Shown here: in pieces, positions 1 to 32,515 of the stretch
Numbering within the stretch: the stretch's first letter is position 1
Layout of the letters: each line of letters opens with the position of its first letter
Virus record (IMG/VR): IMGVR_UViG_3300028275_000006
Span: 62,001 to 126,000 of that record
Length of the DNA: 64,000 nt
Reading direction: 5' to 3' (one strand)
Notes under the pieces: generated by a model
What the model saw: the letters and a program-made list of their open reading frames with translations, nothing else
Databases searched by the model: none
What the model was told of the DNA's origin: nothing
Program-made: the position numbers and the translations under genes

Positions 1-1177
1 CTAAGTTCTTATTACCATGTTTGCTTTTTAATTCGTAACCGCCTTTAACTTTAACAATATGTTCGTTAAACTGTTCTGGATTCATTTTACCCCAGTAACG
101 TAGCAATACTCCAGCAAGAGCATTGGCTTCGTTTTCGTCTGGACTGCCAGTTGCACCATCTAATTCTCTTGCTTCGTTTTGTTTGCGATGCACTAATTCG
201 TGTGCTAGTGTTCGCATAATATCCATTTGATGTCTATCTTTAACAGATACAACTATGTCTTGTGTTTCAGGATCAAAGTATCCAAGTGCAGTAGTCTTTG
301 TATCACCTACTAATTTAATACGTGGTGCTTGTTCTATTTCTAAAAGTTTGATAGCCCATAATGCAAAGTCTTTGATACGTTGCTTTTTATCTGGAGTCCA
401 TGCTTCCATCAATCCGCCGCCGTCACCGCCGTCTCCCGCAGGCACACTACCTACACCACTGTAGCCTGCATCGGTACCATATAGTCCGTAAGGACCTGGT
501 CCATATAACGCACCGTATTTGTTTCTGCGTTTTTTCTTACGACCTTCGTCTACATCTTTGTCACCACTAGTGGCAATTAATTTTCCTTGACTTCTATCTA
601 GACTTTTTAACTGCTGTGGTTCGTGTTCTTCTTCACCTTGTCCCACACGTTTAGCACGTTTAAGTCCATCTAATATTACTTGTAAACTATCTTCGTCTGC
701 TTGATATTTGATACCAATACCGCCAGCGGCTTCCCAAGCACTGATATTACTACCTCTGTCGTCAATTAATACGTTAGGCATTCCGCTAGGATTTCTAGCG
801 TACTTGGCTTTGTTTGAAACAATGTAAATGTTGTCTGGCAGTTGATTTAAGTGTTCATCGATCCAAATACGTTTGTATTTTTCACTGCCTTCGTGGTCGC
901 CGCGTAATGGGCTAGAACAAATATTGTAGCCACCGGCCACATCAACTACAATATCAATTAGTTTGTCTGCTGTAGGAAACTTTGGTAGACGTGCAAAAAA
1001 GTCTGTTCCTACCATTTTGTTTAATGTAGGATCAGTCTTCGCTGGTGGAATGTCTCTGTAGTTTCCGCTTTTAATGCCAGCAAGTTTAGCATACTCTGTG
1101 AAAAAGTCTGCAAGAACTCCGTCCATGTCTACATAGACTTCCATGCCTTGGGGTAATTCTAAATCGCTTGCTCTCAT
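1..1177 (-). CDS. Multidomain protein, 3'-truncated by the window edge: HAD 5'(3')-deoxyribonucleotidase (NT5C-like) + HExxH zinc-peptidase-like domain + further module
   Basis: Not in the ORF track; translated by hand from ATG 1177 (ATGA overlap with the upstream stop). MRASDLE...VYVDMDGVLADFF (HAD motif I)...LIDDRGSN (motif IV)...MRTLAHELVHRKQ...ENEANALAG...QFNEHIVKVKGGYELKSKHGNKNL; no stop met up to position 1. Confidence 0.8.
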   Translation of the reverse strand, partial: MRASDLELPQGMEVYVDMDGVLADFFTEYAKLAGIKSGNYRDIPPAKTDPTLNKMVGTDFFARLPKFPTADKLIDIVVDVAGGYNICSSPLRGDHEGSEKYKRIWIDEHLNQLPDNIYIVSNKAKYARNPSGMPNVLIDDRGSNISAWEAAGGIGIKYQADEDSLQVILDGLKRAKRVGQGEEEHEPQQLKSLDRSQGKLIATSGDKDVDEGRKKKRRNKYGALYGPGPYGLYGTDAGYSGVGSVPAGDGGDGGGLMEAWTPDKKQRIKDFALWAIKLLEIEQAPRIKLVGDTKTTALGYFDPETQDIVVSVKDRHQMDIMRTLAHELVHRKQNEARELDGATGSPDENEANALAGVLLRYWGKMNPEQFNEHIVKVKGGYELKSKHGNKNL

Positions 1178-1461
1178 TTTTTATTTACCGGTTTTTCGCC
1201 TGTCATGTAAGGTAAACTAAACCATAACTGAAACCACTCAGGTGTTCCAGGTTTAATGTTTTGTTCTCTCTGTATTCTGCCTTTATCACTGCCAGTAACA
1301 CTGATGTTACTGCCCTGATACTCGTGTAGTCTTGCGGCATGACCTAAGCCTGCAAGATACTGCATAGATTTAATTTCGTATATAGGATCAGAAGGATCAA
1401 GTAAGCAGTCGTCTGGACTGTCTTGATTTAAATTTTCTGTACTGATTCTATATTGTTTCAT
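1174..1461 (-). CDS. hypothetical protein
   Basis: 95-aa ORF tightly coupled to both neighbours. Confidence 0.65.
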   Translation of the reverse strand: MKQYRISTENLNQDSPDDCLLDPSDPIYEIKSMQYLAGLGHAARLHEYQGSNISVTGSDKGRIQREQNIKPGTPEWFQLWFSLPYMTGEKPVNKK

Positions 1462-1464
1462 TTA

Positions 1465-2436
1465 TTATGAAACCTTAACAACAGTAAATCCTGCTTTTAC
1501 GTAGTGATCGTGAGCATAATTCTTTGCGTGTTCGCGACCTTTAGTAGTAGTTACACGGGGTGTTCTTTCAACTTCATTTCCGTCCTTGTCAATAAGAGTA
1601 AAACGGAATGAATACTCTTCTGGATCCGGTCCATTAACATATTCATCATCTTCGCGTTCACGACGTCCAAAGCCTGTGCGACTAGAATCGTAATCGCGTT
1701 GATACGCATCGTAACTACCGTAACGGCCTTCTTCTAATTCTGACATTTTCATAGCATCTTTTTCCTTCTTAGGTTCTTTTTCTTTTTTAGGCTCTTCTTT
1801 TTTCTTAGGTTCTTCTTTTTTCTTAGAATCTTTTTTCTTTGCTTTTTCCTTCGCCTTTTCTTCATAGGGCATCAAGTACTCGGCAACTAAGTCAAAGAAT
1901 GGTTTACCCATAACAGGTGTTTCTGAACTTACGCCAGCGGCATCGCTAAATGCTTGTCTGTCGCCTTTGGCTACTGCTTCACGTAAACTTGTAGCAGAGC
2001 TCTTACGTAATTCTAATTTTGCTTCTTCTATACTGTCGTGGAACAGTCTAATTTCTGGAAAATTGTATTCGCCGTGCGGACCAGACTTTCCATTATAATC
2101 TTGTACAGTAGGAACTACCCATGCTTCGTCAGTAACGATGATTAATTTTACTGCACCGTGTTTCTGATATACATAACTGGCTAATGTTAACCAACTTGTT
2201 TCGGCAACAATATGTCCTGTAACATCAGGCCAAATAACTTTCATACATTCTGTTTTTACATTGTATGGCAGTGGGTCTTTTGGTCCTACAGTACTTTCAT
2301 TAGTACCAACGTACCATACATCTTTAGTAGCGGCAGTTTCCCAAGCGGCTTTATGTCCTTTGTGCGGAGGATTGAATCGACCAAATATAATGGCTACTTC
2401 ACTTGTTTTATTTTCAAATAAATTTCTTAATCTCAT
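1465..2436 (-). CDS. HIGH-superfamily (cytidylyltransferase-like) nucleotidyltransferase with Lys/Glu-rich linker and C-terminal extra module
   Basis: IIFGRFNPPHKGH (HxGH) and SSATSLRE (KMSKS-equivalent) motifs. Confidence 0.8.
   Translation of the reverse strand: MRLRNLFENKTSEVAIIFGRFNPPHKGHKAAWETAATKDVWYVGTNESTVGPKDPLPYNVKTECMKVIWPDVTGHIVAETSWLTLASYVYQKHGAVKLIIVTDEAWVVPTVQDYNGKSGPHGEYNFPEIRLFHDSIEEAKLELRKSSATSLREAVAKGDRQAFSDAAGVSSETPVMGKPFFDLVAEYLMPYEEKAKEKAKKKDSKKKEEPKKKEEPKKEKEPKKEKDAMKMSELEEGRYGSYDAYQRDYDSSRTGFGRREREDDEYVNGPDPEEYSFRFTLIDKDGNEVERTPRVTTTKGREHAKNYAHDHYVKAGFTVVKVS
1760..1862 (-). repeat. low-complexity Lys/Glu/Pro coding repeat (KKKEEPKKKEEPKKEKEPKKEK)
   Basis: Repeated EEPKK/EPKK units in translation. 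Confidence 0.8.
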
Positions 2437-2437
2437 A

Positions 2438-3586
2438 TTATTCCCCAGGAGTCCACTGGTCTCTGTTTACTAACTTTACATTACCGAATTTCTTTTCAGG
2501 GCCAGCATAGCGTACACGACCTTCTCCGTTTGTGTCCCAGATATCTCCTTGCTCGCCTTCAACCTGTGCAAGTATTTGGTTTTTCATTGATTGTATTTGT
2601 TTAACTAGAGAAAATATAGCATCTACAGCGTTAGGATGGGCTTCTATTTTAGCCTGTATTTTTTCTTGTTTTCCTGCACTAACTTTTGACTTTTCCAACC
2701 ATGCGTTAAAATTCTGTAAACCTAAACTGCTTAACTGTTTAGCTCTTGCTGTTTGATTTACATAGGTGTAGAATATATTCTTAAGGTCACTTAACCCAGC
2801 AGTATCGGACAAGAATCCTTCGATTTGTTCTGCGTGTTGTTGTGCATAACCTTCAATGTTATCAATCATCTTAGTATCGATACTAACAGATTTTTTATTG
2901 TATATCGGACCTTGTACAATTAATTTAGGATTAGCATTAAATTGATCAAAATCGTCTAACGGTTCTTGTTCACTGTCATCCATTCCAAATTGTGGGAAAT
3001 AAGCATGACCGACAACCATTACATCTGCATAAGCAATACGCTTACCTAAATCACTGTCGCCTCTGACATGATAACAAGTTTGTGATTTAGGATTTGGACA
3101 GAATGTGTATACTCCGTCTTTTAAATCGGGCCTGTTTAAAAATAATGCGTCAGCATAGACAAAGCCTACAAAATCTTTTGGAGTTGCCGCATCAAATGCT
3201 GGATATAAATTTGCAAACTTGGCGGCAAATTCTTCACGTTGTTTACGCTCTTCTTCTGTCTTAGGTGTACCGCTCTTGTTAGCAATAAAATCTTTTACTG
3301 CTTCTGGATTATCTGTCTTAGCACCACGTGCCCAACCGTTGTGTCCTGCTAGAATTAATGGTCCATTCTTTGTTTCACGACCCCAATAGATTTGAGGATT
3401 ACCGTCCCATTTCATGCGAATGCTTTCAGAACCTTCTTGTGTAGCGATTTCTTTAACGTGGTCTAATGCTTCGATGGTACCGTCGATGCCGTAGAAGAAA
3501 ACTAGATCTTCGAGATGGTTGAATGCACGGCCCAGTTTCTTTTTAACTGTTTCTGTGGATTCAACAAATAGTTCTCTTAATCTCAT
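2438..3586 (-). CDS. DUF6267-like protein, putative ligase-type (KxDG) nucleotidyltransferase
   Basis: NHLEDL, MKWDGNPQIYWG (motif I-like), late GEGRV and VKLVNR resembling ligase motifs IV/V; adjacent to cytidylyltransferase-like gene as in T4-like phages. Confidence 0.6.
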   Translation of the reverse strand: MRLRELFVESTETVKKKLGRAFNHLEDLVFFYGIDGTIEALDHVKEIATQEGSESIRMKWDGNPQIYWGRETKNGPLILAGHNGWARGAKTDNPEAVKDFIANKSGTPKTEEERKQREEFAAKFANLYPAFDAATPKDFVGFVYADALFLNRPDLKDGVYTFCPNPKSQTCYHVRGDSDLGKRIAYADVMVVGHAYFPQFGMDDSEQEPLDDFDQFNANPKLIVQGPIYNKKSVSIDTKMIDNIEGYAQQHAEQIEGFLSDTAGLSDLKNIFYTYVNQTARAKQLSSLGLQNFNAWLEKSKVSAGKQEKIQAKIEAHPNAVDAIFSLVKQIQSMKNQILAQVEGEQGDIWDTNGEGRVRYAGPEKKFGNVKLVNRDQWTPGE

Positions 3587-4437
3587 TCTTCGCCCCTTGA
3601 CTGCTTGGGACCTTTACGTTGTTTCCATTTTTTATCTGTACTGCACCAGTAACGTCCATAAGTACCTTCTACTACGCCTTGCATCCATGAGAACCATTCG
3701 GCAGAACCTTCTTTAACATCTTCAGGCTTTTTGCCTTCGTTGCCAGGCCAGTTCTCATCGGCTAGTGCGTGTTGAATTTTTGGATTTTGTTCTTTACCTG
3801 GTAGTGCGGCAATAATTCTTTCTACATTACCTAAGTCAGCGGCAGTAGCATGAGCACCGATTAAAATTTTAGCAACTTCGTCTGCATTGTGAGAAACAAA
3901 GTCTGCCTTCTTTCCATTTTCATCTCGGGCAAACAGCCCTTGGAATCCGCTCCACATTAGTCCGTAAGGATATCTTTGGTTACGAGTTTCTTTAGCAATA
4001 CTGGAAAGTAGTATGTGCTTATGTAAACCTTTGAATGGAGTATTTTCAATGCTATAATCGTGTTGATGAAATTTACTAACAGAGCCAGCATCTTTAACAA
4101 ACATAATATCTGCTTGTGCAAACTTATCGCCGTTAGGAACTTTAATGTGTACATTGATGCCAGTTAGTGCAGATTCGGTGCCTCTATCTTGAAAGTATGT
4201 TTTTAATTTTTGTCTTGCTTCTTTGGCTGTCTTAACTTTAAAAAAGTCTAACATGGACTGCTCGTCGACCATTAAGTCCATGTCTCCAGAACTGGCTTTA
4301 TGGCCGGCACTGCCAACAGGAATTAAATCAATGCCCTGCGGCATCATTGATTGCGCCTTGGCTAGTACTTCCTTGGCTTCATCCTTGCCAAATGGTTCTA
4401 CATCAGGAAATACATTTCCACCTTCTAATAGGATCAT
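3583..4437 (-). CDS. Pol-beta superfamily nucleotidyltransferase
   Basis: VGSAGHKASSGDMDLMVD (GS...DxD) and third Asp in QADIMF. Confidence 0.7.
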   Translation of the reverse strand: MILLEGGNVFPDVEPFGKDEAKEVLAKAQSMMPQGIDLIPVGSAGHKASSGDMDLMVDEQSMLDFFKVKTAKEARQKLKTYFQDRGTESALTGINVHIKVPNGDKFAQADIMFVKDAGSVSKFHQHDYSIENTPFKGLHKHILLSSIAKETRNQRYPYGLMWSGFQGLFARDENGKKADFVSHNADEVAKILIGAHATAADLGNVERIIAALPGKEQNPKIQHALADENWPGNEGKKPEDVKEGSAEWFSWMQGVVEGTYGRYWCSTDKKWKQRKGPKQSRGEE

Positions 4438-4855: not shown

Positions 4856-5500
4856 TTAAATTTCGCTGATTAGGTACATTTCGTCCACTCTGCGTATCTT
4901 ATTGCCCAGGAATAGTCTGCACATTCCTAGGGTCTTTTCATTTGCGGCGTAAAAGTAGCCTTCGGAGTGGTATGTACGCTTTAGCAGTTTAATGCTGGGA
5001 ATCTGCTCTGCCCATGCGTGGAAACTTTCGCTAGAATCACGTAGAGGATTTACAGTTACTCTATACTTGTGCGTATACTTTTTAGATATAATACAGTTAG
5101 GGTTAGTTAATAGAAACTTCCTAACTTTATCGTCTGCAGGTTTAGTTACTTCTTTAACATGTCCTAATAGTTGAACAGCATCTAATAAAGAATCACTGTT
5201 GGTGTAAATGCTTAATGTGTCGCTTTCTACACGCAACAAAAAATCAGTTTCTTTATTAAGTAAATCTACAAGTTTGTTTATGTAGATTACATCACTGACT
5301 GTAGCATATTTCTTACGCCAGGATCTAAGTTGTACTCTACCATCCGGGACGGCTTCAATTTGATCACTAAGAATCTTGATTGAAGCCATTGCCCGAGCGA
5401 TAGTTCTGCTACGAAACTCCGAAGCAAAAACATTTATTACACTAATCTTGTTGACATATTTGTCAAAAAACAATTTAGATGTTTGCTTGTACAGTTTCAT
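4856..5500 (-). CDS. hypothetical protein (start probably ATG 5500)
   Basis: Overlaps the clpA 3' end; last gene of the dnaJ-def-clpA run. Confidence 0.6.
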   Translation of the reverse strand: MKLYKQTSKLFFDKYVNKISVINVFASEFRSRTIARAMASIKILSDQIEAVPDGRVQLRSWRKKYATVSDVIYINKLVDLLNKETDFLLRVESDTLSIYTNSDSLLDAVQLLGHVKEVTKPADDKVRKFLLTNPNCIISKKYTHKYRVTVNPLRDSSESFHAWAEQIPSIKLLKRTYHSEGYFYAANEKTLGMCRLFLGNKIRRVDEMYLISEI

Positions 5501-7715
5501 TCTGTAATTCGAGTTTAATTTCATCGTCTTCAACATTGATGTTTACTGCTCCACCCTGTTTCAGACCACCAAACAACATAAGTTTGGATAATGGACGCTT
5601 AATATCCTTATCGATTACACGTTGCAATGGGCGAGCACCCATCTTCTTATCAAAGCCCTTATCTACCAAGTAGTCAATTGCTTCGTTGCTGATTGTAATC
5701 TTAATGCCCTTATCCTTGACCTGTGTTTTTAACTCAACTAAGAACTTGCCAACAATTTTAATCATTGTTTCTTTGCTTAGTTTACCAAATGTAACAACAC
5801 CATCTAAACGATTGCGGAACTCTGGAGCGAAGAATTTCTTAAGTTCTTTATCTTCGTAGTCATTATCTTGACTACCAAAACCAATAACGTTCTTTTCAGC
5901 ATCTTGTGCGCCAAGGTTAGTAGTCATAATCAAAATAATGTTACGAGCATCTGCTACTTTACCATTAGATCCTGTTACAAAACCATTGTCCATAATCTGT
6001 AATAGGATAGTTGCTACATCTGGATGTGACTTTTCAATTTCGTCTAACAATAGAACACAATGTGGATTCTCTTGTAGTTTAGTAATCAACAAGCCAGCGT
6101 TTTCTTCAAAGCCAACATATCCAGGAGGGCTACCAATCAACTTAGATACGCTGTGTTTTTCTTGATACTCCGACATGTCAAAGCGAATAAGTGGAACACC
6201 TAACTGTTTACTAAGTTGTTTTGCGGCTTCAGTCTTACCAACACCAGTTGGCCCCATGAATACAAAACTACCCACTGGTTTATTATCAGATTTAAGTCCT
6301 GCTTGTGCTACAAGAATCTTATCAACGATTTCGTCAATGGCTTCATCTTGCCCATAAACTTCACCTTTAAGGTTCTTTTCAAGGTTAACAAGATTTTCGT
6401 TTTCTTTTTCCTTGACTGTGTCTTCGGGAAGTTTAACCATTTTTGCTAATTCGTATTGAATCTCAGGAACATCGACAATCTTATGTTCTGCGTTCTTAAT
6501 ATTGAAACGACTACAAGCCACATCAATTAGATCAATTGCTTTATCTGGTAATTTCTTATCTGTCATATATTTTACAGATAATTTAACTGCTGTTTCAATA
6601 GCCGCATCTGTAATTTCAGCACCGTGATGTTTTTCGTAATACTTCTTAATACCTTTAAGAATATCTACTGCTACTTCTGGAGTAGGCTCGTCAACAGTGA
6701 TGCGTTGGAAACGGCGCATTAACGCACGATCCTTTTCAAAGTACTTACGATATTCTTCCCAAGTAGTAGATGCAACTACTTTAATGTTGCCTTTGCTTAG
6801 AGCAGGCTTCATCATATTAGCCAAGTCATTGGCATTACCTTGTCCACCTGCGCCTGCGCCACTAATCATGTGTGCTTCATCGATGAACAATACAGTTTTG
6901 CCTTTGCCTGTTAGTGCCTTAAGTACTAATTTAAAACGTTCTTCAAAGTCACCGCGATATTTACTACCAGCAAGCATAGCACTAATGTCTAAGTTATAGA
7001 CTGTATATTCTTTTAAGAAGTCAGGAACAGCACCATTAATAATATTATGTGCTAGGCCTTCTGCGATAGCAGTCTTACCTACACCAGGGTCGCCTACTAA
7101 CAATACATTATTTTTAGTTCTGCGACCGAGCCCTAGCGCAATTTGTTCTAGTTCTTCAGTTCTACCGATAACTGGATCGATTTTATTTTTCTTGACTTGG
7201 TCATTGAGGTTAGTAGTAAATGCTTTCAGTGCTTTTTCACTTTGTGCATCTGTGACCTGTTCTTCTTCGTCTTCATCGATTTCGCTGTTAATAAAATCAG
7301 CAAACTTTTCACGATCCACGCCGCCCTTATTAATATAGAATACAGCGTAACTGCGCTTTTCGCTAAGTGCGCTCATAAACACATCTACAAGCTCAATGCT
7401 TTGACGTCCGCTGAAAAGGACTTGTGTGAATGCACGATTAAGAACACGCTCAACAGTTTGAGTCTTCTTAGGTTTAAATCCTTTGGGAATTGGATCTATT
7501 TTAATTTCGTCTAATTGATTTTTAAGATAGTGTTCGAGATTCTTTTTAATGTAATCCCCGTCACCACCGAAGTTTACAAGAAGTTCGTAGAACTTTTCTT
7601 CGCAGAGCATAGCAAAAATAAGATGCTCTAGCGTGACATATTCGTGTCCTAATTTTTTACAGTCTGCAACAGCCTTTTCAAAAACTACTTGCAGTTGATC
7701 ACTTGGTTCTACCAT
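5475..7715 (-). CDS. clpA: ATP-dependent Clp protease ATP-binding subunit ClpA
   Basis: Clp N-domain (HEYVTLEHL); two AAA+ modules (GDPGVGKT/FIDEAH; GPTGVGKT/LLDEIEK); GSKYRGDFEER pore loop; IGF ClpP-docking loop (VIGFG); GARPL; no ClpB middle domain. Confidence 0.93.
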   Translation of the reverse strand: MVEPSDQLQVVFEKAVADCKKLGHEYVTLEHLIFAMLCEEKFYELLVNFGGDGDYIKKNLEHYLKNQLDEIKIDPIPKGFKPKKTQTVERVLNRAFTQVLFSGRQSIELVDVFMSALSEKRSYAVFYINKGGVDREKFADFINSEIDEDEEEQVTDAQSEKALKAFTTNLNDQVKKNKIDPVIGRTEELEQIALGLGRRTKNNVLLVGDPGVGKTAIAEGLAHNIINGAVPDFLKEYTVYNLDISAMLAGSKYRGDFEERFKLVLKALTGKGKTVLFIDEAHMISGAGAGGQGNANDLANMMKPALSKGNIKVVASTTWEEYRKYFEKDRALMRRFQRITVDEPTPEVAVDILKGIKKYYEKHHGAEITDAAIETAVKLSVKYMTDKKLPDKAIDLIDVACSRFNIKNAEHKIVDVPEIQYELAKMVKLPEDTVKEKENENLVNLEKNLKGEVYGQDEAIDEIVDKILVAQAGLKSDNKPVGSFVFMGPTGVGKTEAAKQLSKQLGVPLIRFDMSEYQEKHSVSKLIGSPPGYVGFEENAGLLITKLQENPHCVLLLDEIEKSHPDVATILLQIMDNGFVTGSNGKVADARNIILIMTTNLGAQDAEKNVIGFGSQDNDYEDKELKKFFAPEFRNRLDGVVTFGKLSKETMIKIVGKFLVELKTQVKDKGIKITISNEAIDYLVDKGFDKKMGARPLQRVIDKDIKRPLSKLMLFGGLKQGGAVNINVEDDEIKLELQNETVQANI

Positions 7716-8226
7716 TTAATTTCCTCTGTTTTTTCAGTGCTAAATCTAACTTTAACTTACTTACTCTTTTGGTAAAAGTAATGCCGTCTAAGTGGTCAAT
7801 TTCATGTTGAATACACTTGGCGTCATAACCACTTAATGTAATTGTACATTCTTTTGCTGTCTTGTCAAGATATTTTATTGTAATATTATTAAATCTGTTA
7901 ATCTTTATGAACAAATTTGGAAAACTCAAACAGCCTTCCTCGTCTATACACTCGTCGGATCCGCTGACAATTTCGGGATTAAACATGGCAAATGGTTCTT
8001 GCCCACTAGGTTTGACTACAACAACTCTGCGATCAAATCCAACTTGATTAGCGGCAATGCCGATGCCACGGCCGCCTAGCATTATCTCGACCATGGCTTG
8101 TTCTATTTGGTTAGGATCGATGCCGCAATTAAAATCAAAGGGCTCTAATTTTGTATAGAGTATTGGGTCTGGATCTGTTCTAAGATAAAAATCTTTAGGT
8201 TCTGTAACGGTCTGAAAGTTGCTCAA
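7699..8226 (-). CDS. def: peptide deformylase (start uncertain; TTG 8226 proposed)
   Basis: All three PDF motifs: [24 protein letters not shown]. Confidence 0.92.
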
Positions 8227-9019
8227 TTTGAATCTTATCTTCCGTGAATAGTATTTTGGGAATTGTAATTTGTACTTGTATAAACAAATTTCCTCTTTGA
8301 TGATTGTGTGGACCGACTGGAAGTCCGTAACTATCACACTTAATCATTTGACTAGGTTGTATGCCTGCCGGAACTTTGATTTCTAATTCTTTGTCTTCTA
8401 ATGTTTTAAAGCGGATTGTTTTTCCTAACATAGCATCAAACGCAGAAATTTCTACTTCTGCATATAAGTTCCTGCCATCACGTTTGAATCTTGGATGTGG
8501 AAGTTCAATAATTTGTGCTATTACATCGCCCCTAGGCATATTAGGAATGCTGTCGTCTCCTAATCCTCTAAAACGAATTGAGTCACCGTTTTGTACACCT
8601 GCAGGAATACTTAATTGTAGTGCCTGTTCTTTTCCACTAGGTAATCTGATACTGCCAGTAACTTCTTTGCCGACAAGTATTTCTTCTAAAGTCATTTCGA
8701 CACGGATATTGATATTCCTGTTCTTTCTGGACTGCTGTCTAAAGCCAGCACCAAAGGGATTAGCACCAAACATGGCACCAAACAAATCATTCATGTCGTT
8801 CATATTGCCAGTATGAAAACTATACTGTGGCATTGGGTTGTCGTATTGAGCTCGTTTTTGGTCATCACTAAGGGTGCGATATGCTTCTTCAATTTGTTGA
8901 AATTTAGAAGTATCGCCGCCTCTGTCAGGATGGTGCTTTGAAGCCAATTTACGATATGCTTTTTTGATATCGTCTTGGCTAGCAGATTTTGAAACTCCTA
9001 GTATTGAATAATAATCCAT
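8195..9019 (-). CDS. dnaJ: DnaJ/CbpA-type (class II) co-chaperone
   Basis: J-domain DYYSILGV...HHPDRGG, G/F-rich linker, C-terminal DnaJ_C domain, no zinc finger. Confidence 0.9.
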
Positions 9020-23206: not shown

Positions 23207-26200
23207 TTAGAATCTACCAACAACAATCTCAACTAGGCCTTCGCCTAAATCGTCTTTGTTCTCTAAACTCTTACCAATAATAGTTCCTACAGATGGAGTA
23301 TTATTAACTATTGCGTAACCTTTCTTAGCCGCAGTAACTAGAATATCACCTTTCTTAACCTTACCAAGTACTTTACATGGCAAGCGTCCTGTTAGGCCTA
23401 CTGCTAGTGGATGTTTTCCTGCTAAATCAGAGTTCATCAAATGCGCTGGTTTTTCAGAAATAACACCAGCAACTCTAGTATCGTTATGTTTGTCAGTGAC
23501 TGTAATTTCTTCATCACCACCAAATACTACAACAGTACCAGTTTCATATTCTGCATCTGACAAGTATTTTTCAGCCAAGTCAGCGTAACGAGCACTTGTA
23601 GCAGTACCATTGAATAATGTTGCGTATAGTGTGTCGGTAAATGGATTACAATAAATGCCGCCTGTGCCATATACACTATTACCGCTACCCCATAACATTT
23701 GATATGTGCTGTTACTATCGTTGTTATAGTTAATTGTAACTGTACTTGCATTACCTGCAATGTTCATTGACTGTCCGCTAATGAACGAAGCAACTTTTGC
23801 GGCTGTAGCAGAGCGATAGTAGTTATCGCCAAACTTAGCCATTATGTATGTAATGGTGCCACCACTTACATCGTCGCTACTGTTAAAGTAACTGCTGTTA
23901 ATATAACGTCCGTTGAAGTCACCGTTAACGTCACGTGCAACTAATGTGCTTCCTGTGGCCGCACTTGTTGCGTTAGTTTGGATTGTACGTGTTGTACTAC
24001 CATCGTAACTTGAACCAGCAGTGAAACTTAGGTATGTGCTTAGACCCAGTGTACCAGCCAATGTACCAGTAACAGCACCGTAGATAGTTCCACCAACACG
24101 TAGGTCGCCACTGATACCTGCACCGCCTGTAACCTGTAATGTACCAGTACCGTTGGCAGCACCTGTTACTGCTTGGTTAGCAGTTAAGGTTACTGTATCG
24201 TTAGCAGACAACAATTTAAAATAACCATTACCTCGAGTAGTTGCACCAATGTTTACGTTGTTTATTGATCCGACACTGGCCGGAGCAATAGTTACAGTAC
24301 CGGTACCACTTGGACTTAGTGTTACGTTAGCATTAGCAGGACTAAATGTTGTAGTGCTTGCTGATGTTATTGCGTTTGCACTTAAAGTACCAACTGTGGT
24401 AATAGTTGTGCCTGCTGAAGTAGTTCCAACTGCTGTTAAGAAGTCTACAGCACCGGGTGTAGTCATAGTCAGTGTAGTTCCGCTGACGCTTAAGGTCTTA
24501 TAACTACTTGAAGTTAAGTCTAACTGTGCTACAGCAACACGGCCGCTACCATCAGATTGTATCAATGAACTAGCCTGAGCACTTGTACTAATGTTTGTTG
24601 TACTGTAAGCGTTTGGACCAATAGCAGTTAAAATCATTGCACGACCATTGCTACCTACTGATCCTGGAGCAAATGACGCATTCTTAATACCATCGCCGTT
24701 GGTAACAATCTGTCCAGATGTTACTTGACGAGGATATGTAGCACTGCCTGTATTATTACCTAAATAAGTGTCGTTGGCAATATACTGTAATTTAGTTTGT
24801 AATACACCTGTAGTTGTTGAACTGGATGTTTGCAACTCAATCCAACCGTTAGTTGCAGTAAATTCTGTACTCTTGAAACTTGCTAGACCCAAATCTGCCT
24901 GTGCAATACTTGTAGCATTTGCACGAGTAGTTGCTTTATTCATGTCTAACTTACTTTGTGCAATAGCCGCACTAGAATTAACGTCTGCGTTAATAATTAC
25001 ATTAGACTTGATGTTTAAAGCAAGATTTTTAGTTCCAGGAGTCAATGAAGTTTGAATATCGCCTGTGCTAACTGTTTCAGCGTTGATCCATTTAACTCCG
25101 TTATAAACTAATAAATCATTTAAACTTCTTGCTGGACTTGTTGAAGTATCAACTCTGTCATCGCTTAGTTCTTGATTTCTAACATATAACTTGTTAGCCG
25201 CATCTGTATCAGCAGTAGGACTACCTAAGTTAGCAATAACAAATCCGCCCATGTCCATTGGATCTGGACCAGTAAATGTTAACAAACCAGCACGATCCAT
25301 GTAGCCTGGACCAATTAGTGCAGTTGGATCTAGAACGTTATTTGTACGATCCATTCCAAGACGTCTGTCAATGTAACCTTGTGTTGCCGCTTCAGTTGGT
25401 AGCGCATCGTTAGCACCGTCAGTAAATCTATCATCGTTTGAGAATTCACTAACTGTAACACCACGCTTAAATCCTAGACCGTCTAAGTTTGACAACGCAA
25501 TAGATGCCGCAAACGTTACACGACCAGTACCTTGGTCAACTGTAAAGAATCGACCTACACGGAAAATACCGTCTTGGTCTGTGGTTACATAGAAACAACG
25601 TCCTCTTGTACGTTCTGTAACTTCACGTGCTTGGTTAGGTTCTTTTGGAGCACCGTAAATCTTGCTTGGGAAGTTAGTATCGTTATAGCCTCCAGTACCA
25701 ATGTCTAAGAAGTCATGTCCTGTAACACGGCAAGTACTAATACGTACAATAACTTCTGCTGGCTCTGTGCTAGATAAACCTGCACGTAATGTTGGAGGTT
25801 CAGAAATATCCAAGTTAAAGTCTGGATCAACTGGTGTATTAATACCGCTAGCAGATGTTCCTGCTAGACACTTATCAGCGACATCTTCTATTTCAACATA
25901 AGCGTAACCGGCTAATAACCCCATGTCAGTGTAACTTAAAATTTTATGAATCTTGCCATCCCAGGCAGTAATCATATCTCCGGTATTAAGTCTGCTTTCA
26001 ATGTCAGTTTCGTTTACACGGTCGATGGCAATCTTAGTATCACCAGCAGTCGACCCCATAGTCTGTCCAACATTATCTGGATCAGCGTTAGATACATTTT
26101 CTGCATTGACTAGTAATTTTACATAATCGTAAGTTGTATCGAAGCCTAGAATACTTTCGTCTACCGCAAGGTCTTCATTTAATGGACCTTTGTTACCGTA

Positions 26201-29200
26201 TGCTAACACACGATAAACAATAGCACCTGCATCGGGATCACCGACGAATGTCAATGCAGTACTTGGACGAACCGGGTTAGTGTCATCGACTTCGTAGAAC
26301 TTAAAGTTTTGGTTACTGCGAATAATAATTGGTTGGTCATGTGACAATGCTACGGCCAAGCCGTTTGTAGCAGTATCATTATTACCGCCAGTGTTGATGT
26401 TTAGACGTAGAACGTTGCCTAGGCCCCATAGGCTAGCCAAACCGCCTGCCCATGTTCCAGGATTGGTACTGTACTCTAGTGTAACACTAGATGTTGTACT
26501 AGCGGTAGCAGTATATACACCGTTAAACCCAGAAGTTGTTGATCCACTAACTGTGTAAGGTACACCAATTCTTGGTGTATATGGTTCAGCAGTGAACGAA
26601 TATGTTACGTAATATTTTCCGCCTGTTGGCCCAGTCTTAAGTGGTGTTCCAGAAACAGACTGTGCCAAGGTACTTGAAACATCAGTTACACCTGCAACTT
26701 CGTAACGAGCAATACCGTTACCAATAATAGTTTTAACAGTGATAAAGAAGCCCGAACCTGTTCCGCCTACGTTTGTATTACTGCAACTTAAAATATCACC
26801 TTCGCTGTATCTAATACCTGCGGCAACTAAACCTACAGTAGTTACTACACCTCCTGACACAACAATGTTAGCAGTGATACCACTACCAGTTCCGCCTGTT
26901 AACGGAACATTAATATATGTGCCGTTGGTATAACCACTACCACCGATTAAACTAGTTGCGTCTAGTTCTGTAACAACGCCAGCGCCGTGGTTAATTTCAA
27001 CTTCAGATACGTTGTATGGTGAGTAATCATGTTGGTAGAAAAATACCTGTAAATCACCAACATCGTTGTCTGTGCTATAAATTCCTTGTTTGTAAACACG
27101 AGCAACCTGCATCATGTTGTCTGACAAGTTACACTTATCTGGAACTTCTAATGGATCACTACCTTCAGAAATAATACCATACTCGCCGTGTGCGTTAGAA
27201 CCGTTCAATGAACGAATCTGTCCACCGTTGTTGGCATAATAAGCAGTCCAGCAATAGTAACTGAACACAGAAACTGTTTCAATCAAACCAATGTTTGTAG
27301 CAACCAGTCCATAACCTAAGTCGTTAATCTGTGTAAAGTCATTTGAACACATACTGGTGTTACCAGCACTTAGTAGCATAAAGTCTTTTACATACTCTAT
27401 GGTAGTAGTGCCAGTGCCAAATGCACCCGGGTCACTTGGATAACGTAGTGTCATCGAAGTTAGTGTAGATGCTACACACTCTACAGCATCATTGTTATAG
27501 TTAGAGTTGCTGTTGCCAAACACTCTATAACGTGTTTTAGTTCTAGGAGCAGTAGTTCCAACGGGCGTAACAATGCTGAATACTACATCGTAAGATCCAT
27601 CCCCGACGCCCGAGTCTGCCTTGCTAGTGAAGGTAGAAATAGTATATTCTAAGTCGTTAGTTACAGGAGTAGTTGTAGAAAGAACTAATCTGTATGTTGG
27701 GTAAACGATAGGTTTGGCACCAGTTAATACTGTTGAAACATCTACTTCCGGGTCTGTAATAACTTCGTTTAATAAATCAAACAACTGTCCTGCTCGTGTA
27801 ACAAATGCAGAGCCGTCGTAGTCAGAACTGAATACCTGTGATACTCTATTCTCTACAGCAACATCGTTAATAACTTGATAATTTAATGTTGGTGGAACTT
27901 GATTCAATACAGCCTGTGCAACTTCCTTGGCATAGGCAAATGAATCTAATGTTTGTGATAATTGATTTTCTAATACAACACGGCTACTAGCAGTACCTAC
28001 ATAGTAACGCTGTGCGGCACGAATTGTTAAGTATGTTCCGCCATATAACAAGTCTGCTGAAACTGCGGCAACAATAAAGCCAACGTCTCGTGAACAAATT
28101 TCTTCATTGTAAACTAATGTGTTTGTATAATTAGCATCGATATAATTTGTTACAGCAGTTTGTAAAGTTGACTTAGCACTTTGTAGTGCAGAATTTGCAC
28201 CAGTTAAGCCAGCACTTACCCAAGCAGTACTTGGAGTAATTGTTGAAGGAACAGAACCGAGCCCAAGGTCGATAATTGTTAAAATTTCTCCAATACGCTG
28301 TCCAGCAGTAGCACTGGCAGAACTGTTACCTGGAGTACCGCGAACCTGCGCAACACCACCTTGTAATGCAGTAATAGGTAAGTCTAATGCAATGTCTTCA
28401 ACTAGACTTTGTAGATAACCATATGCGGCCAATGTTGCTGGTTTCTCAGGAGCCGCAACTTGTAGAGTTGTGTAAGAATAATAAGCCTTACCAGCAATCA
28501 ATGTTTGAATGTTACCACCGTAGGTTAGGTCGTGATATAGTGCATCTAAAATGTATTCTGTATCACGTAAGCATACAGCAGGGTCATAACTTAATCCAAC
28601 ATAGTTGTTAGAAATATATTGAATTACTTCTGCTTTAATAAATTCTCTGTTAGATTCAATCAGTGTTCTAGCACGATTATAATTTACATCGTAGCCTGTT
28701 GGATCAGGAGTTACGATTGCAGGTTCTTGAGTTAGTCCGTTAGTAATAACATCTAAGAACATATTCATGTTGGTAGTTACACTAGTAACTGCGGTAGCAC
28801 TTGCACTAACAACAGATAATATTTCATCTCTTAAGAAAGTAAATGCGTCAATAGTTGCGGCTTTTTGTACGCCAACAGCCACAGCGGCTGAAGCTCTGTA
28901 ATAAGATCTTGCCGCTGTAATTGTCTGGAAGTTGCCGCCAAACATTAAGTCGTAACCAATAGCATCAATTACATAACCCACGTCACGTTGACATGTAGCA
29001 GAATCATAGGTAAATCCTACATATTTGTTGTTAATGTAGTTAATAACTTCTGCTTTGATAAAATCTTTATTATCGACTAACAATGCACGAGCACCACGAG
29101 CACTTGGCGGATTTTCTAAAATGCCAATGAACTCGTCAAACAAATCTTGAATAGTTGCTTCTGCTAAGCCGCCATCGGTAATATCGGTATCGATATACTG

Positions 29201-32200
29201 TAGAACAGATTGTTGATATCGTACTGTTGGATCTTCGTTATTAATAACATTTAATATCAATGTTTCAATGTAGTTAATAGCCGCAAGTGTGTTGGCCAAC
29301 TGCTGGTCAATAACAATCTTAGAACTAGCACTAGCATTGAAGTATGCTAGAGCTGCCTGAACTGTTTTTAAATTACCGCTATAATAAATGTCGTGTGCAA
29401 TAGCATCGCAGATGTATCCAGTGTCACGAGCACAAGTATCTTGGTTGTAACTATATCTTTGTTGTAGATAAACTAATGTGTCAGACTTGATACTTTCTTT
29501 GTTGTTTAACAATAATGTTCTGCTGTCTGTTAACGAACCAGACACACTATAGAAAGTTGGATATTCAATAGTAGGAGCCGCTTCACGTCCGCTTAAAATA
29601 ATAGTATTAATGTAGCCCATTAACACACCTACTCTAGCAGATTCAGTTGCGCTACCTGGATTAACTAAATCAAATACCTGTGTTACAGCACTTTGTTTAG
29701 GGAACGGAACAGGAGTATTAGTAACAACTAACTGTGCAACACCACTGGCATAGGCCAATGCTTCTGTGGTTTGCAATGTTTGTCCAGGAATTTGCAAACT
29801 TCCGTTACCATCGTAATATTGATATCCGGCTTCTACAGTTGCCGAGTTACCTTCATATAGTAAGTCGTAAACAATAGAATTTAAAATGTATGCCGCATCT
29901 CGACGACACTTGTCTTCGTCGTAGACAAAGTCTGGATATTCTTCAGCAATCCAGGCAATAATTTCTTCTTTAATAAATTCAATGTTATCTAAAATAAGAT
30001 TTTTTGCATTTACTCTTGAAGTAGGAGCACCTGACGGATCTGACCATGTAATTGTATCTGATGAAATAATACCGTTAGCAATGATATCTGTTATCTCATC
30101 AAAACTTGCTTCTGCTCTTAGACGTGCAACAGAGTTACCGGCTAATACATCAGAAATTAATGTTCTTGTATAGATTAACGCATCTAAGTATTCATCTTTT
30201 TGGTCTGGAAGAATACTGTATTGTGTGCCGCGATAGTATGATTGTCCAGCACGTACAGCATTAAAGTTTGTACCTAGTGCTAGATCGTAACCTAGTGCAT
30301 CAACAATCAATCCAACGTCACGAGCACATTTGGTTTCGTTGAATGTAAATGGTGGACTTAGTTCTGTATTAATATAACCAATAACTTCTGCTTTGATAAA
30401 GTCGATGTTTCGACGAATTAATTTTCTAGCATTTCCATAGCCGTTGCCGTCATCAGTGTATGCTTCAACTTTAAAAGTTCTTCCGTCAATAACAAATGAG
30501 CAAGGAGTTGTTGGAGCACGTTCACTGCCTGTTACTAGGAATTCTGTGTCGCTGATTTTTTCTTGAATCTTAAGAGGAACGTTACCAGCAAAGCCGTCAA
30601 CATACTGTCCACCAGCAAAACGTTGTTTGTTTAGTGATCCTGCAAAAGAACCGGACTGTTGAATATATGCAGACTTGGTTAAAATTTGACCTTCTGGGTC
30701 AAGTACCATCATAAAGCCGCCGTGGCCTTGACAGGTAATCTGACGAATAATAACAGCATCGTTACATAAGAATACGTCAAGGTCTCTGTTGTTCTTTGGT
30801 TCACTTAAAATATCAGACGGGTCTGTTAGATAGTGATAACCGTATTCTGTGCTGGTTAAAGTTAATCCGTCAAATGTTTTATCTCTACGGAACCAAACGT
30901 CAACCCATGGACTGCGACTTGGGCGGTCCGCTGGACGAACAATACATCTACGCAATTCGTCACCAACGATAGCAACGTTTGGCGGGACACGAATTGGATA
31001 GTCTTCAAAATAGATACCAGATTCAACAACAATACTAATTTGGATATTTTTAACTGCTTGGTCAAACTCTAGGTTTTCGCCAGGCACAAAATCACCAATA
31101 ACATCCTGCAAGTCAAAATAGTCTTCGCCGATACTTGAACTACCATCGGAGCCATAGTATTGATAAATGAAACCCTGTGCGCCGCTGGTACGTCCAACAA
31201 CAATCTTACCGGAGACAATATCTGGTTTTGGTAATTGACCTTGGTCAACACGAGAACCACCGTTGTTAGTAAAGTAAACACGAGTAGTACCAGATGCACC
31301 AGATTCAATTCTTGTAACTTCAGAGAACGCTTCACCGCCACCGTAGGCAATTAACTGACGATAAGGACCAGTTTCCCATGGTGCATCATTTACTAATTGT
31401 TCTGCTTTTTGACAGGCTTTGTTAATACTTGCATAAGCATAAGAACGATCGCGTCCTTCTTTTCCACGCGGTGTACGTGCCTGTGTGTCGTCACCGCCTG
31501 TGGTAACGTACAAGTTAAATCTGCTTGAATAACTTGAATTATCTACATAATATTTTGTAGCGGCTTGTAAGTCATCTTCTCCGTTAGGCGTACCAGCACC
31601 TGCAAGTCCGCCTGGATGATCTGCTAAGTTTAGCACACCAGTCATATCGCCGCCAGTTTTTAATACAACTTCTGCGGCACGTGGTGCTTGGTTACCTGTG
31701 GCGTTTGCTGGCACATTTAAGTGACCAGTCATTGTGTCGCCTGTAATGTTTACATATTTGGAGTCGGCATAACCTTTGTTAATAGCAAAGGAATCTATGC
31801 TATAAAGAGTTTCGTGCTGTGTGTTGAAACTATTAACAGCAGTTTGGAAATCTGTTTGATTAATAGGACTGCGTAAGCCGCCGATTAATTGATTACGTGC
31901 ATCCAGCGCATATTGTAATTTTGGTAATGGGTCGTCCTGTAATTTAGAACTTAATGTATCAATTTTAACGGAACCGTAACTGGTAATAGTACCAGTTGCC
32001 GCACTAGTTGATAAGTTTGTTCCTGCGTTTGTATATACTAGAACATTGTCTACTGTGCCAGTTAACAATAGGGCAGAAGTAGTGTTAAATGAAGTATTGT
32101 CTGTGGACGCGATTGTAACTCGTTGTCCAGGATCTAAATTGTGGTTTGCTGAAAGTGTAATAGTGGCAACGTTGCTACTTCTTGATACACTAACAATATC

Positions 32201-32485
32201 AAAGGTTTCTTGCTCGGAATAATCAAACTGGATAGTACCGTTAGGACTGAAAAAGTCTTTGAATACTAAACTAGTACCAATAGAATTAACTACTGGAATC
32301 TTATTACCTTGTCCTACTAATGTATCAGGAGTATCGCTAAGGTCAGTGAACTTTAAAAATCCGCCTTGACCGAAAACAGCATATAACTCTTGGAAGTTTT
32401 CATTCGTTTTTCTAAACGCTTCACGGATACTATCACCAGTTCCGTCATTACCTGATACGCCGATGTCGACTATTTTACGTGCCAT
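23207..32485 (-). CDS. giant (~3,090 aa) tail/baseplate structural protein with six ~150-aa repeats and a C-terminal chaperone-like domain
   Basis: gp9/gp10-like N-terminus GNDGTGDSIREAFRKTNENF; AATKYYVD fibre motif; C-terminal ATSARYADLAEKY; GGAG RBS before ATG 32485. Confidence 0.8.
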   Translation of the reverse strand: MARKIVDIGVSGNDGTGDSIREAFRKTNENFQELYAVFGQGGFLKFTDLSDTPDTLVGQGNKIPVVNSIGTSLVFKDFFSPNGTIQFDYSEQETFDIVSVSRSSNVATITLSANHNLDPGQRVTIASTDNTSFNTTSALLLTGTVDNVLVYTNAGTNLSTSAATGTITSYGSVKIDTLSSKLQDDPLPKLQYALDARNQLIGGLRSPINQTDFQTAVNSFNTQHETLYSIDSFAINKGYADSKYVNITGDTMTGHLNVPANATGNQAPRAAEVVLKTGGDMTGVLNLADHPGGLAGAGTPNGEDDLQAATKYYVDNSSYSSRFNLYVTTGGDDTQARTPRGKEGRDRSYAYASINKACQKAEQLVNDAPWETGPYRQLIAYGGGEAFSEVTRIESGASGTTRVYFTNNGGSRVDQGQLPKPDIVSGKIVVGRTSGAQGFIYQYYGSDGSSSIGEDYFDLQDVIGDFVPGENLEFDQAVKNIQISIVVESGIYFEDYPIRVPPNVAIVGDELRRCIVRPADRPSRSPWVDVWFRRDKTFDGLTLTSTEYGYHYLTDPSDILSEPKNNRDLDVFLCNDAVIIRQITCQGHGGFMMVLDPEGQILTKSAYIQQSGSFAGSLNKQRFAGGQYVDGFAGNVPLKIQEKISDTEFLVTGSERAPTTPCSFVIDGRTFKVEAYTDDGNGYGNARKLIRRNIDFIKAEVIGYINTELSPPFTFNETKCARDVGLIVDALGYDLALGTNFNAVRAGQSYYRGTQYSILPDQKDEYLDALIYTRTLISDVLAGNSVARLRAEASFDEITDIIANGIISSDTITWSDPSGAPTSRVNAKNLILDNIEFIKEEIIAWIAEEYPDFVYDEDKCRRDAAYILNSIVYDLLYEGNSATVEAGYQYYDGNGSLQIPGQTLQTTEALAYASGVAQLVVTNTPVPFPKQSAVTQVFDLVNPGSATESARVGVLMGYINTIILSGREAAPTIEYPTFYSVSGSLTDSRTLLLNNKESIKSDTLVYLQQRYSYNQDTCARDTGYICDAIAHDIYYSGNLKTVQAALAYFNASASSKIVIDQQLANTLAAINYIETLILNVINNEDPTVRYQQSVLQYIDTDITDGGLAEATIQDLFDEFIGILENPPSARGARALLVDNKDFIKAEVINYINNKYVGFTYDSATCQRDVGYVIDAIGYDLMFGGNFQTITAARSYYRASAAVAVGVQKAATIDAFTFLRDEILSVVSASATAVTSVTTNMNMFLDVITNGLTQEPAIVTPDPTGYDVNYNRARTLIESNREFIKAEVIQYISNNYVGLSYDPAVCLRDTEYILDALYHDLTYGGNIQTLIAGKAYYSYTTLQVAAPEKPATLAAYGYLQSLVEDIALDLPITALQGGVAQVRGTPGNSSASATAGQRIGEILTIIDLGLGSVPSTITPSTAWVSAGLTGANSALQSAKSTLQTAVTNYIDANYTNTLVYNEEICSRDVGFIVAAVSADLLYGGTYLTIRAAQRYYVGTASSRVVLENQLSQTLDSFAYAKEVAQAVLNQVPPTLNYQVINDVAVENRVSQVFSSDYDGSAFVTRAGQLFDLLNEVITDPEVDVSTVLTGAKPIVYPTYRLVLSTTTPVTNDLEYTISTFTSKADSGVGDGSYDVVFSIVTPVGTTAPRTKTRYRVFGNSNSNYNNDAVECVASTLTSMTLRYPSDPGAFGTGTTTIEYVKDFMLLSAGNTSMCSNDFTQINDLGYGLVATNIGLIETVSVFSYYCWTAYYANNGGQIRSLNGSNAHGEYGIISEGSDPLEVPDKCNLSDNMMQVARVYKQGIYSTDNDVGDLQVFFYQHDYSPYNVSEVEINHGAGVVTELDATSLIGGSGYTNGTYINVPLTGGTGSGITANIVVSGGVVTTVGLVAAGIRYSEGDILSCSNTNVGGTGSGFFITVKTIIGNGIARYEVAGVTDVSSTLAQSVSGTPLKTGPTGGKYYVTYSFTAEPYTPRIGVPYTVSGSTTSGFNGVYTATASTTSSVTLEYSTNPGTWAGGLASLWGLGNVLRLNINTGGNNDTATNGLAVALSHDQPIIIRSNQNFKFYEVDDTNPVRPSTALTFVGDPDAGAIVYRVLAYGNKGPLNEDLAVDESILGFDTTYDYVKLLVNAENVSNADPDNVGQTMGSTAGDTKIAIDRVNETDIESRLNTGDMITAWDGKIHKILSYTDMGLLAGYAYVEIEDVADKCLAGTSASGINTPVDPDFNLDISEPPTLRAGLSSTEPAEVIVRISTCRVTGHDFLDIGTGGYNDTNFPSKIYGAPKEPNQAREVTERTRGRCFYVTTDQDGIFRVGRFFTVDQGTGRVTFAASIALSNLDGLGFKRGVTVSEFSNDDRFTDGANDALPTEAATQGYIDRRLGMDRTNNVLDPTALIGPGYMDRAGLLTFTGPDPMDMGGFVIANLGSPTADTDAANKLYVRNQELSDDRVDTSTSPARSLNDLLVYNGVKWINAETVSTGDIQTSLTPGTKNLALNIKSNVIINADVNSSAAIAQSKLDMNKATTRANATSIAQADLGLASFKSTEFTATNGWIELQTSSSTTTGVLQTKLQYIANDTYLGNNTGSATYPRQVTSGQIVTNGDGIKNASFAPGSVGSNGRAMILTAIGPNAYSTTNISTSAQASSLIQSDGSGRVAVAQLDLTSSSYKTLSVSGTTLTMTTPGAVDFLTAVGTTSAGTTITTVGTLSANAITSASTTTFSPANANVTLSPSGTGTVTIAPASVGSINNVNIGATTRGNGYFKLLSANDTVTLTANQAVTGAANGTGTLQVTGGAGISGDLRVGGTIYGAVTGTLAGTLGLSTYLSFTAGSSYDGSTTRTIQTNATSAATGSTLVARDVNGDFNGRYINSSYFNSSDDVSGGTITYIMAKFGDNYYRSATAAKVASFISGQSMNIAGNASTVTINYNNDSNSTYQMLWGSGNSVYGTGGIYCNPFTDTLYATLFNGTATSARYADLAEKYLSDAEYETGTVVVFGGDEEITVTDKHNDTRVAGVISEKPAHLMNSDLAGKHPLAVGLTGRLPCKVLGKVKKGDILVTAAKKGYAIVNNTPSVGTIIGKSLENKDDLGEGLVEIVVGRF
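27750..30450 (-). repeat. six tandem 140-159-aa repeats, consensus N(x)2-FIKAEVIxYI...C-x-R-D-x-G-Y-I-x-D-A-I-x-Y-D-L-x-Y-G-G-N
   Basis: Cys codons at 30326, 29906, 29432, 28991, 28571, 28094 (spacing 140/158/147/140/159 aa). Confidence 0.85.
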
Positions 32486-32515
32486 TGAATACTCCAAAAA
32501 AGACTTTGTATCCAA

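Follow-up and report, generated by a model that had tools for sequence, protein, structure and literature searches.

Why does a giant phage encode, in a single open reading frame, a nucleotidase, a zinc peptidase-like domain and several small modules joined at glutamate residues? The question came from a first-pass annotation of a 64,000-nucleotide stretch of a T4-like phage genome from river water (hereafter, the window), which placed three boundaries of this frame at DVDE|G, GLME|A and QFNE|H. It inferred that such modular proteins are head cargo, cut into separate effectors during capsid maturation. To answer this question, we first completed the gene, then asked whether its joints are true module boundaries, and finally examined whether the motif at the joints points to a particular protease.

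Architecture of the 581-residue protein

The window corresponds to positions 174577-238576 of a 270,181-bp IMG/VR virus record (G000; CheckV 71%). The ORF lies on the minus strand, which the first-pass annotation did not state, occupies window positions 2..1177 and is open at its 3' end because it runs off the left edge of the window. Reading into the flanking sequence (L001) gives a complete protein of 581 aa, here called P0002 (L001:935-2677, minus strand). Five IMG/VR contigs carry it at 100% identity, and it occurs in at least 18 riverine metagenomes and 6 metatranscriptome libraries. Contigs from DNA and RNA libraries, including an 8.7-kb RNA-library contig, span the ORF without joints or indels. 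An assembly artefact is therefore rejected, although the RNA-library contigs do not prove transcription. The features of the gene and of its neighbours are as follows.

1139..1177, minus strand: N-terminal extension (residues 1-13, MRASDLE...), a divergent member of the leader class of the family
545..1138, minus strand: module A (residues 14-211), HAD-superfamily 5'(3')-deoxyribonucleotidase (NT5C) with the DMDG motif (residues 17-20) at 1118-1129, ending in an acidic tail
545..553, minus strand: joint J1, V209-D-E211 | G212
404..544, minus strand: module B (residues 212-258), with a basic head (RKKKRR), a Gly/Tyr-rich middle and a Gly/Asp tail; 4.7 kDa, pI 9.5, predicted disordered
404..412, minus strand: joint J2, L256-M-E258 | A259
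62..403, minus strand: module C (residues 259-372), a minimal gluzincin/IrrE-like zinc metallopeptidase by predicted fold and catalytic residues, with HELVH at 188-202 and the third ligand E348 at 134-136
62..70, minus strand: joint J3, F370-N-E372 | H373
2..61, minus strand: first 20 residues of module D (residues 373-416); the rest of D, module E (417-524), joint J5 (V522-D-E524|N525) and module F (525-581) lie left of the window, at L001:935-1500
1465..2436, minus strand: neighbour of 323 aa, with leader MRLRNLFE (2413-2436), a cytidylyltransferase/NMNAT-like enzyme, a Lys/Glu-rich linker, joint L234-E-E236|G (1729-1737) and an 87-aa tail module (1468-1728)
2438..3586, minus strand: neighbour of 382 aa, with leader MRLRELFVE (3560-3586) followed by a DUF6267 protein with a KWDG (ligase-like) motif
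3583..4437, minus strand: neighbour of 284 aa with no family match, with joint V255-V-E257|G (3667-3675) and a 27-aa YGRYWC tail (3586-3666)

Module A is identified by Pfam PF06941 (residues 14-154; 26.7 bits against a cut-off of 24.8), by phrog_2643 at 4e-20 and by Foldseek matches to human mitochondrial deoxyribonucleotidase 4l6a (TM 0.51) and to 1mh9, with pLDDT of 80-92 over the core of the AlphaFold2 model. Module B, which the first-pass annotation described as a basic/Gly-Tyr linker, is in fact a conserved and mobile module, although its pLDDT is only 25-38. It follows NT5C, an unnamed 188-aa domain or the peptidase, or comes directly after a leader, as in the relative P0036 and in a 144-aa ORF of a related locus (L059). 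The assignment of module C relies on its residues and its predicted fold. H326, E327, H330 and E348 are invariant in 56 sequences, pLDDT is 85-95, and the model matches the minigluzincins 4jiu and 4jix (TM 0.55-0.59), abylysin and jannalysin, and 122-aa IrrE-like phage proteins (TM 0.80). However, its profile matches remain below threshold in both Pfam and PHROG, since DUF6782 scores 18.9-20 bits against a cut-off of 27 and Peptidase_M78 scores 15.4-16.6 against 22, so that module C is not a scored member of these Pfam families. Modules D, E and F have no match in Pfam, PHROG or the ESM atlas. Module F is a predicted helical peptide of 6.4 kDa and pI 10.9 with pLDDT of 73-89, while module E folds with low confidence, and a dedicated prediction of E and F together gave a mean pLDDT of 56.6, too low for a meaningful fold search. 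Among the neighbours, the 323-aa protein matches phrog_3041 at 4e-16 and its orthologs carry other tails or none, whereas the 382-aa protein matches PF19782 at 2.8e-16 and its leader is conserved in orthologs. The YGRYWC tail of the 284-aa neighbour recurs behind a different, leader-bearing protein in two related loci (L051 and L056), again after a Glu.

Joints, leaders and the prohead protease motif

A word search found more than 2,274 relatives of P0002, and these reuse its modules in other orders and with other enzymes. The ends of BLASTP matches to 120 relatives cluster at residues 201-211, 251-263, 368-373, 412-416 and 521-524. These are the three joints of the first-pass annotation, E211|G212, E258|A259 and E372|H373, and two more beyond the window edge, confirming that the proposed boundaries coincide with true module boundaries. 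Modules are permuted in P0014, P0043 and P0076, and relatives combine them with GH19, dCMP deaminase, cytidylyltransferase, DUF5661, DUF6321, amidoligase and AAA proteins. In P0013, joint J3 is fused directly to module F (QFNE|NFADG). At tblastn level the modules are single-copy within the genome, and a tblastn search of cultured phages matches only the NT5C part. The joints lie in predicted disordered segments or at fold edges, as pLDDT falls below 50 at residues 194-258, 410-430 and 523-532 and the confident fold of module C starts right after E258.

An interesting finding is that the joints carry a specific motif. The tripeptide [ILV]-x-E lies within 4 residues of 155 of 535 homology breakpoints, against 52±6.6 at random positions. 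In 289 non-redundant windows around breakpoints it occurs 108 times, against 51.4±5.5 after shuffling each window's own residues, whereas [ILV]xD, [ILV]xK, Ex[ILV], [ILV]E, [ILV]xxE, [AGS]xE, [KR]xE and [DE]xE are not enriched. The sequences are related, however, and these permutation figures overstate independence. By column counts, J1 has E in 35/35, with relatives showing ...ALEE|R or ...DVDE|G; J2 has [ILV] in 54/56, [N/K] in 50/56 and E in 53/56; and J5 has [VLI] in 40/42 and E in 51/53. J3 is less constrained, with F/L/I/V at P3 in 56/56 but E372 in only 31/49 (63%), and J4 (E416) is acidic but non-canonical, with A/L/K at P3. P0002 contains only five [ILV]xE sites, and three of them are J1, J2 and J5.

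This motif is the cleavage site of the T4 gp21 prohead protease, which cuts after Glu in L/I-X-E (PMC9026906). The same record encodes a Peptidase_S77 (gp21) homolog (PF03420, 7.8e-27) and a Gp23 capsid protein (PF07068, 3.2e-97), as do four of five long related contigs, including both 364-kb complete genomes. By capsid protein, the nearest cultured phages are Phosso, Vibrio 2.275.O, PA5oct and Erwinia pEa_SNUABM_19, at 65-70% identity, and the head cluster is syntenic with that of PA5oct. The protein in the scaffold (gp22) position has the highest [ILV]xE density of 223 proteins (6.3 per 100 aa), and the protease itself ranks fifth. The capsid protein has an L-S-E|S site where T4 gp23 is cut (L-T-E65|A). 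Prediction of a complex between the gp21 homolog (P0123) and the J5 segment (P0002:500-545) gave no verdict (score 0.00) and is not evidence either way.

In addition, the leaders and the joints are equivalent. Neighbouring genes start with a shared motif (MRLRELFVE, MRLRNLFE and MRLIDIINE), and in related loci 66 unrelated ORFs start M-[RKL]-[LIA]-x-[DENQ]-[LIF]-hydrophobic, of which 46 have Glu at residues 8-10, against 178 of 1155 (15%) other ORFs. When a module is the first in a protein, only an 8-10-residue leader ending in the same Glu precedes it, and the module begins at the same residue as after an internal joint, as is seen for module B in P0036 and for modules C, E, F and a further "TSAGN" module. 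A search with module F alone found 326 small proteins. Of the best 120, 116 have the NFxDG start of the module. All 116 have Glu just before it, 106 have V/I/L/F/M at P3, and 63 are nothing but an 8-11-aa leader plus the module, although the Glu before module F could simply belong to the conserved ENFADG motif of that module. Their 9-mer consensus, MK[TS]FK[EQ][FLI]xE, is close to the T4 IPII/IPIII capsid-targeting sequence, MKTYQEFIAE, and in T4 such a 10-aa N-terminal sequence (CTS) targets unrelated proteins to the prohead (PMC9026906, PMC12373910). Similar N-termini also occur on head-cluster proteins, namely the scaffold-position protein (…SLFEN), a 79-aa ORF beside the portal, and PA5oct gp150, which is annotated as detected by MS in virions. 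However, PA5oct has only two genes with a strong leader, and one of them was not found in virions, leaving an enrichment test underpowered. In G000, a strict MR[L..] pattern found only the local cluster and a loose pattern was only weakly enriched (9 against 3 expected), while a leader PSSM found 8 genes above the 99.5th percentile of the internal-Met background, against 1.4 expected, with the 382-aa neighbour scoring highest (19.5). P0002 itself scores 4.6, which is above this percentile. Its M[RK]A[SK][DE][FL] start is the commonest in the family and is an extension that ordinary NT5C genes lack, as free-standing NT5C relatives start at residue 12-14. Nevertheless, this is a weak leader with no canonical site at residues 8-10. 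A search for the T4 late promoter, TATAAATA, upstream of the cluster was uninformative, because the motif is rarer than chance in this genome (8 sites against about 33 expected).

A probable capsid-cargo precursor and its alternatives

Taken together, these results support the interpretation of the first-pass annotation, and its own test, whether homologs shuffle modules at the Glu joints, came out positive. We consider it more likely than not, although by inference from sequence only, that P0002 is a cargo precursor of a T4-superfamily jumbo phage, made as one 65-kDa chain and recruited into the assembling prohead core through its leader-class N-terminus and/or its small basic modules. When the gp21-type protease is activated, the chain would be cut after Glu at the exposed [I/L/V/F]-x-E joints, releasing a 22-kDa deoxyribonucleotidase, a 13-kDa zinc peptidase and several small peptides, including the internal-protein-like module F, which would stay with the DNA and enter the host at infection. 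No virion proteome, N-terminal sequence or protease assay exists for this phage or for any carrier of modules B-F, so packaging, cleavage, ejection and any effector role of the pieces are inferred. It should also be noted that the gene lies 75 kb from the head genes, among replication and nucleotide-metabolism genes.

An alternative, which we consider unlikely, is that P0002 is an uncleaved multidomain "polyvalent" protein, packaged or not, whose joints are merely conserved flexible linkers kept because modules are exchanged there by recombination. Polyvalent phage proteins with a zincin-like peptidase hub and many unrelated domains are a described class, and some, such as N4 vRNAP and ArdC, are transferred unprocessed (PMC5512222). 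Linker homology also extends about 8 residues upstream of E211. However, linkers alone do not explain why aliphatic-x-Glu is enriched while [ILV]xD and [ILV]xK are not, why P3 stays hydrophobic in front of module F across unrelated upstream sequences, why a bare 8-aa leader ends in the same Glu, or why the scaffold is the most motif-rich protein. It is even more doubtful that the precursor is processed, in cis or in trans, by its own module C, the mechanism proposed for polyvalent proteins (PMC5512222). The catalytic residues are invariant and the closest solved folds are minigluzincin zymogens. However, many proteins with identical joints lack module C, for example the NT5C+F+GH19 protein P0049 and the small proteins found with module F. 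Moreover, the conserved positions, P1 Glu and P3 aliphatic with a variable small or polar P1', are the known gp21 signature, while gluzincins probably tend to favour a hydrophobic P1'. The peptidase module is thus more likely cargo than the processing enzyme. Equally doubtful is a cytoplasmic fusion enzyme of nucleotide metabolism, with leader and tails serving another purpose, such as recognition by the ClpA-type unfoldase and chaperones encoded 4 kb away, translation control or assembly of a cytoplasmic complex: although the gene sits among DNA-polymerase and nucleotide-metabolism genes next to ClpA-like, peptide deformylase and DnaJ genes, and NT5C, dCMP deaminase and cytidylyltransferase are ordinary phage metabolic enzymes, the NT5C homologs of cultured phages lack both leader and tails, the permuted module order and the pairing with lysozyme-like GH19 and a peptidase make no metabolic sense, the leader resembles the T4 CTS and head-core N-termini, and its conservation is at amino-acid-class level, not at nucleotide level.

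A broader possibility, which we regard as about as likely as not, is that freshwater and riverine T4-superfamily jumbo phages use a simple and portable grammar, an 8-10-residue capsid-targeting leader plus hydrophobic-x-Glu joints. Because leader and joints would be the same signal, any module could be moved, fused or split freely, and capsids could be loaded with shuffled precursors that the prohead protease cuts into a cocktail of injected enzymes and small basic peptides. Proteins injected with phage DNA act before any phage gene is expressed, and in T4 they are anti-defence factors, but outside T-even and phiKZ-like phages they are known almost only from virion proteomics of cultured phages. 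If this grammar holds, the injected proteome of thousands of uncultured phages could be read directly from sequence, and T4-type cargo could be delivered as multi-module polyproteins. It would also nominate unexpected injected activities (deoxyribonucleotidase, minimal zinc peptidase, dCMP deaminase, cytidylyltransferase, GH19) as early take-over or counter-defence tools, and offer a natural design rule for packaging foreign proteins in phage capsids.

Relationship to known systems

The closest known systems are the internal proteins of T-even phages (IPI, IPII, IPIII) and Alt, with their capsid-targeting sequence and gp21 processing. In both cases these are T4-superfamily phages with a gp21-type protease, unrelated proteins share only a roughly 10-aa N-terminal leader ending in hydrophobic-x-Glu (though the leader of P0002 itself is weak and lacks a canonical site), the genes cluster in a variable hotspot and small basic products occur. 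Here, however, several modules inferred to be cargo are strung in one chain with internal sites and free module order, the inferred cargo includes metabolic-type enzymes and a zinc peptidase, and the carriers are 270-364-kb river and freshwater jumbo phages. What appears to be new is this combination, multi-module precursors with enzyme cargo in a large clade of uncultured jumbo phages, whose joints match the prohead-protease site and are interchangeable with the leader, and our literature searches found no description of it. The polyvalent proteins of phages and conjugative elements (PMC5512222) likewise place multiple unrelated effector-type domains in one polypeptide, with a zincin-like metallopeptidase as a recurrent module, extensively mosaic architectures and predicted delivery with the DNA. 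In contrast, those proteins are predicted to be autoprocessed by the metallopeptidase, no common joint motif or leader is described in the sections of that paper we consulted, and the modules of P0002 are much smaller. In phiKZ, 201phi2-1 and SPN3US, many head-internal ejection and inner-body proteins are cut C-terminal to Glu after a short motif by a diverged gp21 homolog and are ejected into the host (PMC9026906). The present phage belongs to a different lineage, its P3 is aliphatic as in T4, and its architecture is beads-on-a-string with shuffled modules. Finally, the T4 gp22 scaffold and the gp67/gp68 core proteins are substrates cut at many L/I-x-E sites, but scaffold fragments are discarded, whereas the modules here are conserved folded units or conserved peptides and are presumably retained.

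A possible mimic of the capsid protein N-arm

Another finding concerns the gene located just downstream of the polyprotein-like ORF, which was compared with the capsid protein of the same phage. The two features, given in the flanking locus L001 and in the whole viral record G000, are as follows.

L001:276-935, minus strand (G000:173352-174011): gene encoding a 219-aa protein
G000:98731-99906: capsid protein

The 219-aa protein ends in a module that begins ...FDE|TATPGGTSAGMV, and free-standing versions of 76-88 aa begin leader|TATAGATSAGNI. This arrangement mirrors the predicted mature N-terminus of the capsid protein itself, ...LSE|SASTGATSAGNV, while PA5oct has ...VE|NASAGATQAGNI. It may be that the module is a mimic of the N-arm of the capsid protein.

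Other features of the window and of the record

Next to the cargo-like cluster, three genes are encoded in a row, and the window also contains a very large ORF.

window 5475-9019, minus strand: ClpA/ClpB-type double-AAA unfoldase (746 aa), peptide deformylase (212 aa) and a DnaJ (274 aa)
window 23207-32515, minus strand: giant ORF of 3,102 aa

A link between protein handling and cargo loading is conceivable. The giant ORF has no Pfam family at E below 1e-5, and ARAGORN found no tRNA or tmRNA genes in window 1-64000. In the whole record G000, the T4 late-promoter motif TATAAATA is under-represented, with 8 sites against about 33 expected, and is not placed before head genes. This T4-like phage probably uses another late signal.

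Leader-like starts within and beyond the gene cluster

Two more strong leader-bearing genes lie far from the cluster, outside the window, and another is found in PA5oct.

G000:21527-22126: gene encoding a 199-aa protein that starts MRLREITE...
G000:35126-35482: gene encoding a 118-aa protein that starts MRAKEFIDE...
PA5oct MK797984.1:179881-180267: hypothetical gene EST35_0271

The second of the two distant genes showed a weak tblastn match to module E, one of the unnamed modules of the polyprotein-like ORF. In PA5oct, EST35_0271 has a near-perfect leader (MKIKEIILE) that starts 5 codons inside its annotated start, so the true start may be the internal Met. Virion MS of PA5oct also flags a DNA ligase, FtsH and ClpP as virion-associated.

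Within the cluster itself, two further features and the leader-bearing genes are as follows.

window 1174-1461, minus strand: 95-aa ORF with no leader and no family match
window 1738-1850, minus strand (residues about 196-232 of the 323-aa protein): Lys/Glu-rich repetitive linker (KKEEPKK-type repeats)
window 1465-4437 and G000:167942-175753: hotspot of about 9 adjacent minus-strand genes with leader-like starts

The 95-aa ORF is wedged between two leader-bearing genes, with overlapping stop and start codons. The linker lies between the cytidylyltransferase-like domain and the ELEE|G joint, and orthologs either end here or carry other tails. The leader-like starts in the hotspot are MDIRSIL, MDMKQIL, MRLIDII, MRASDLE, MRLRNLF and MRLRELF. 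These genes have variable small C-terminal tails and recall the internal-protein hotspot of the T-even phages.
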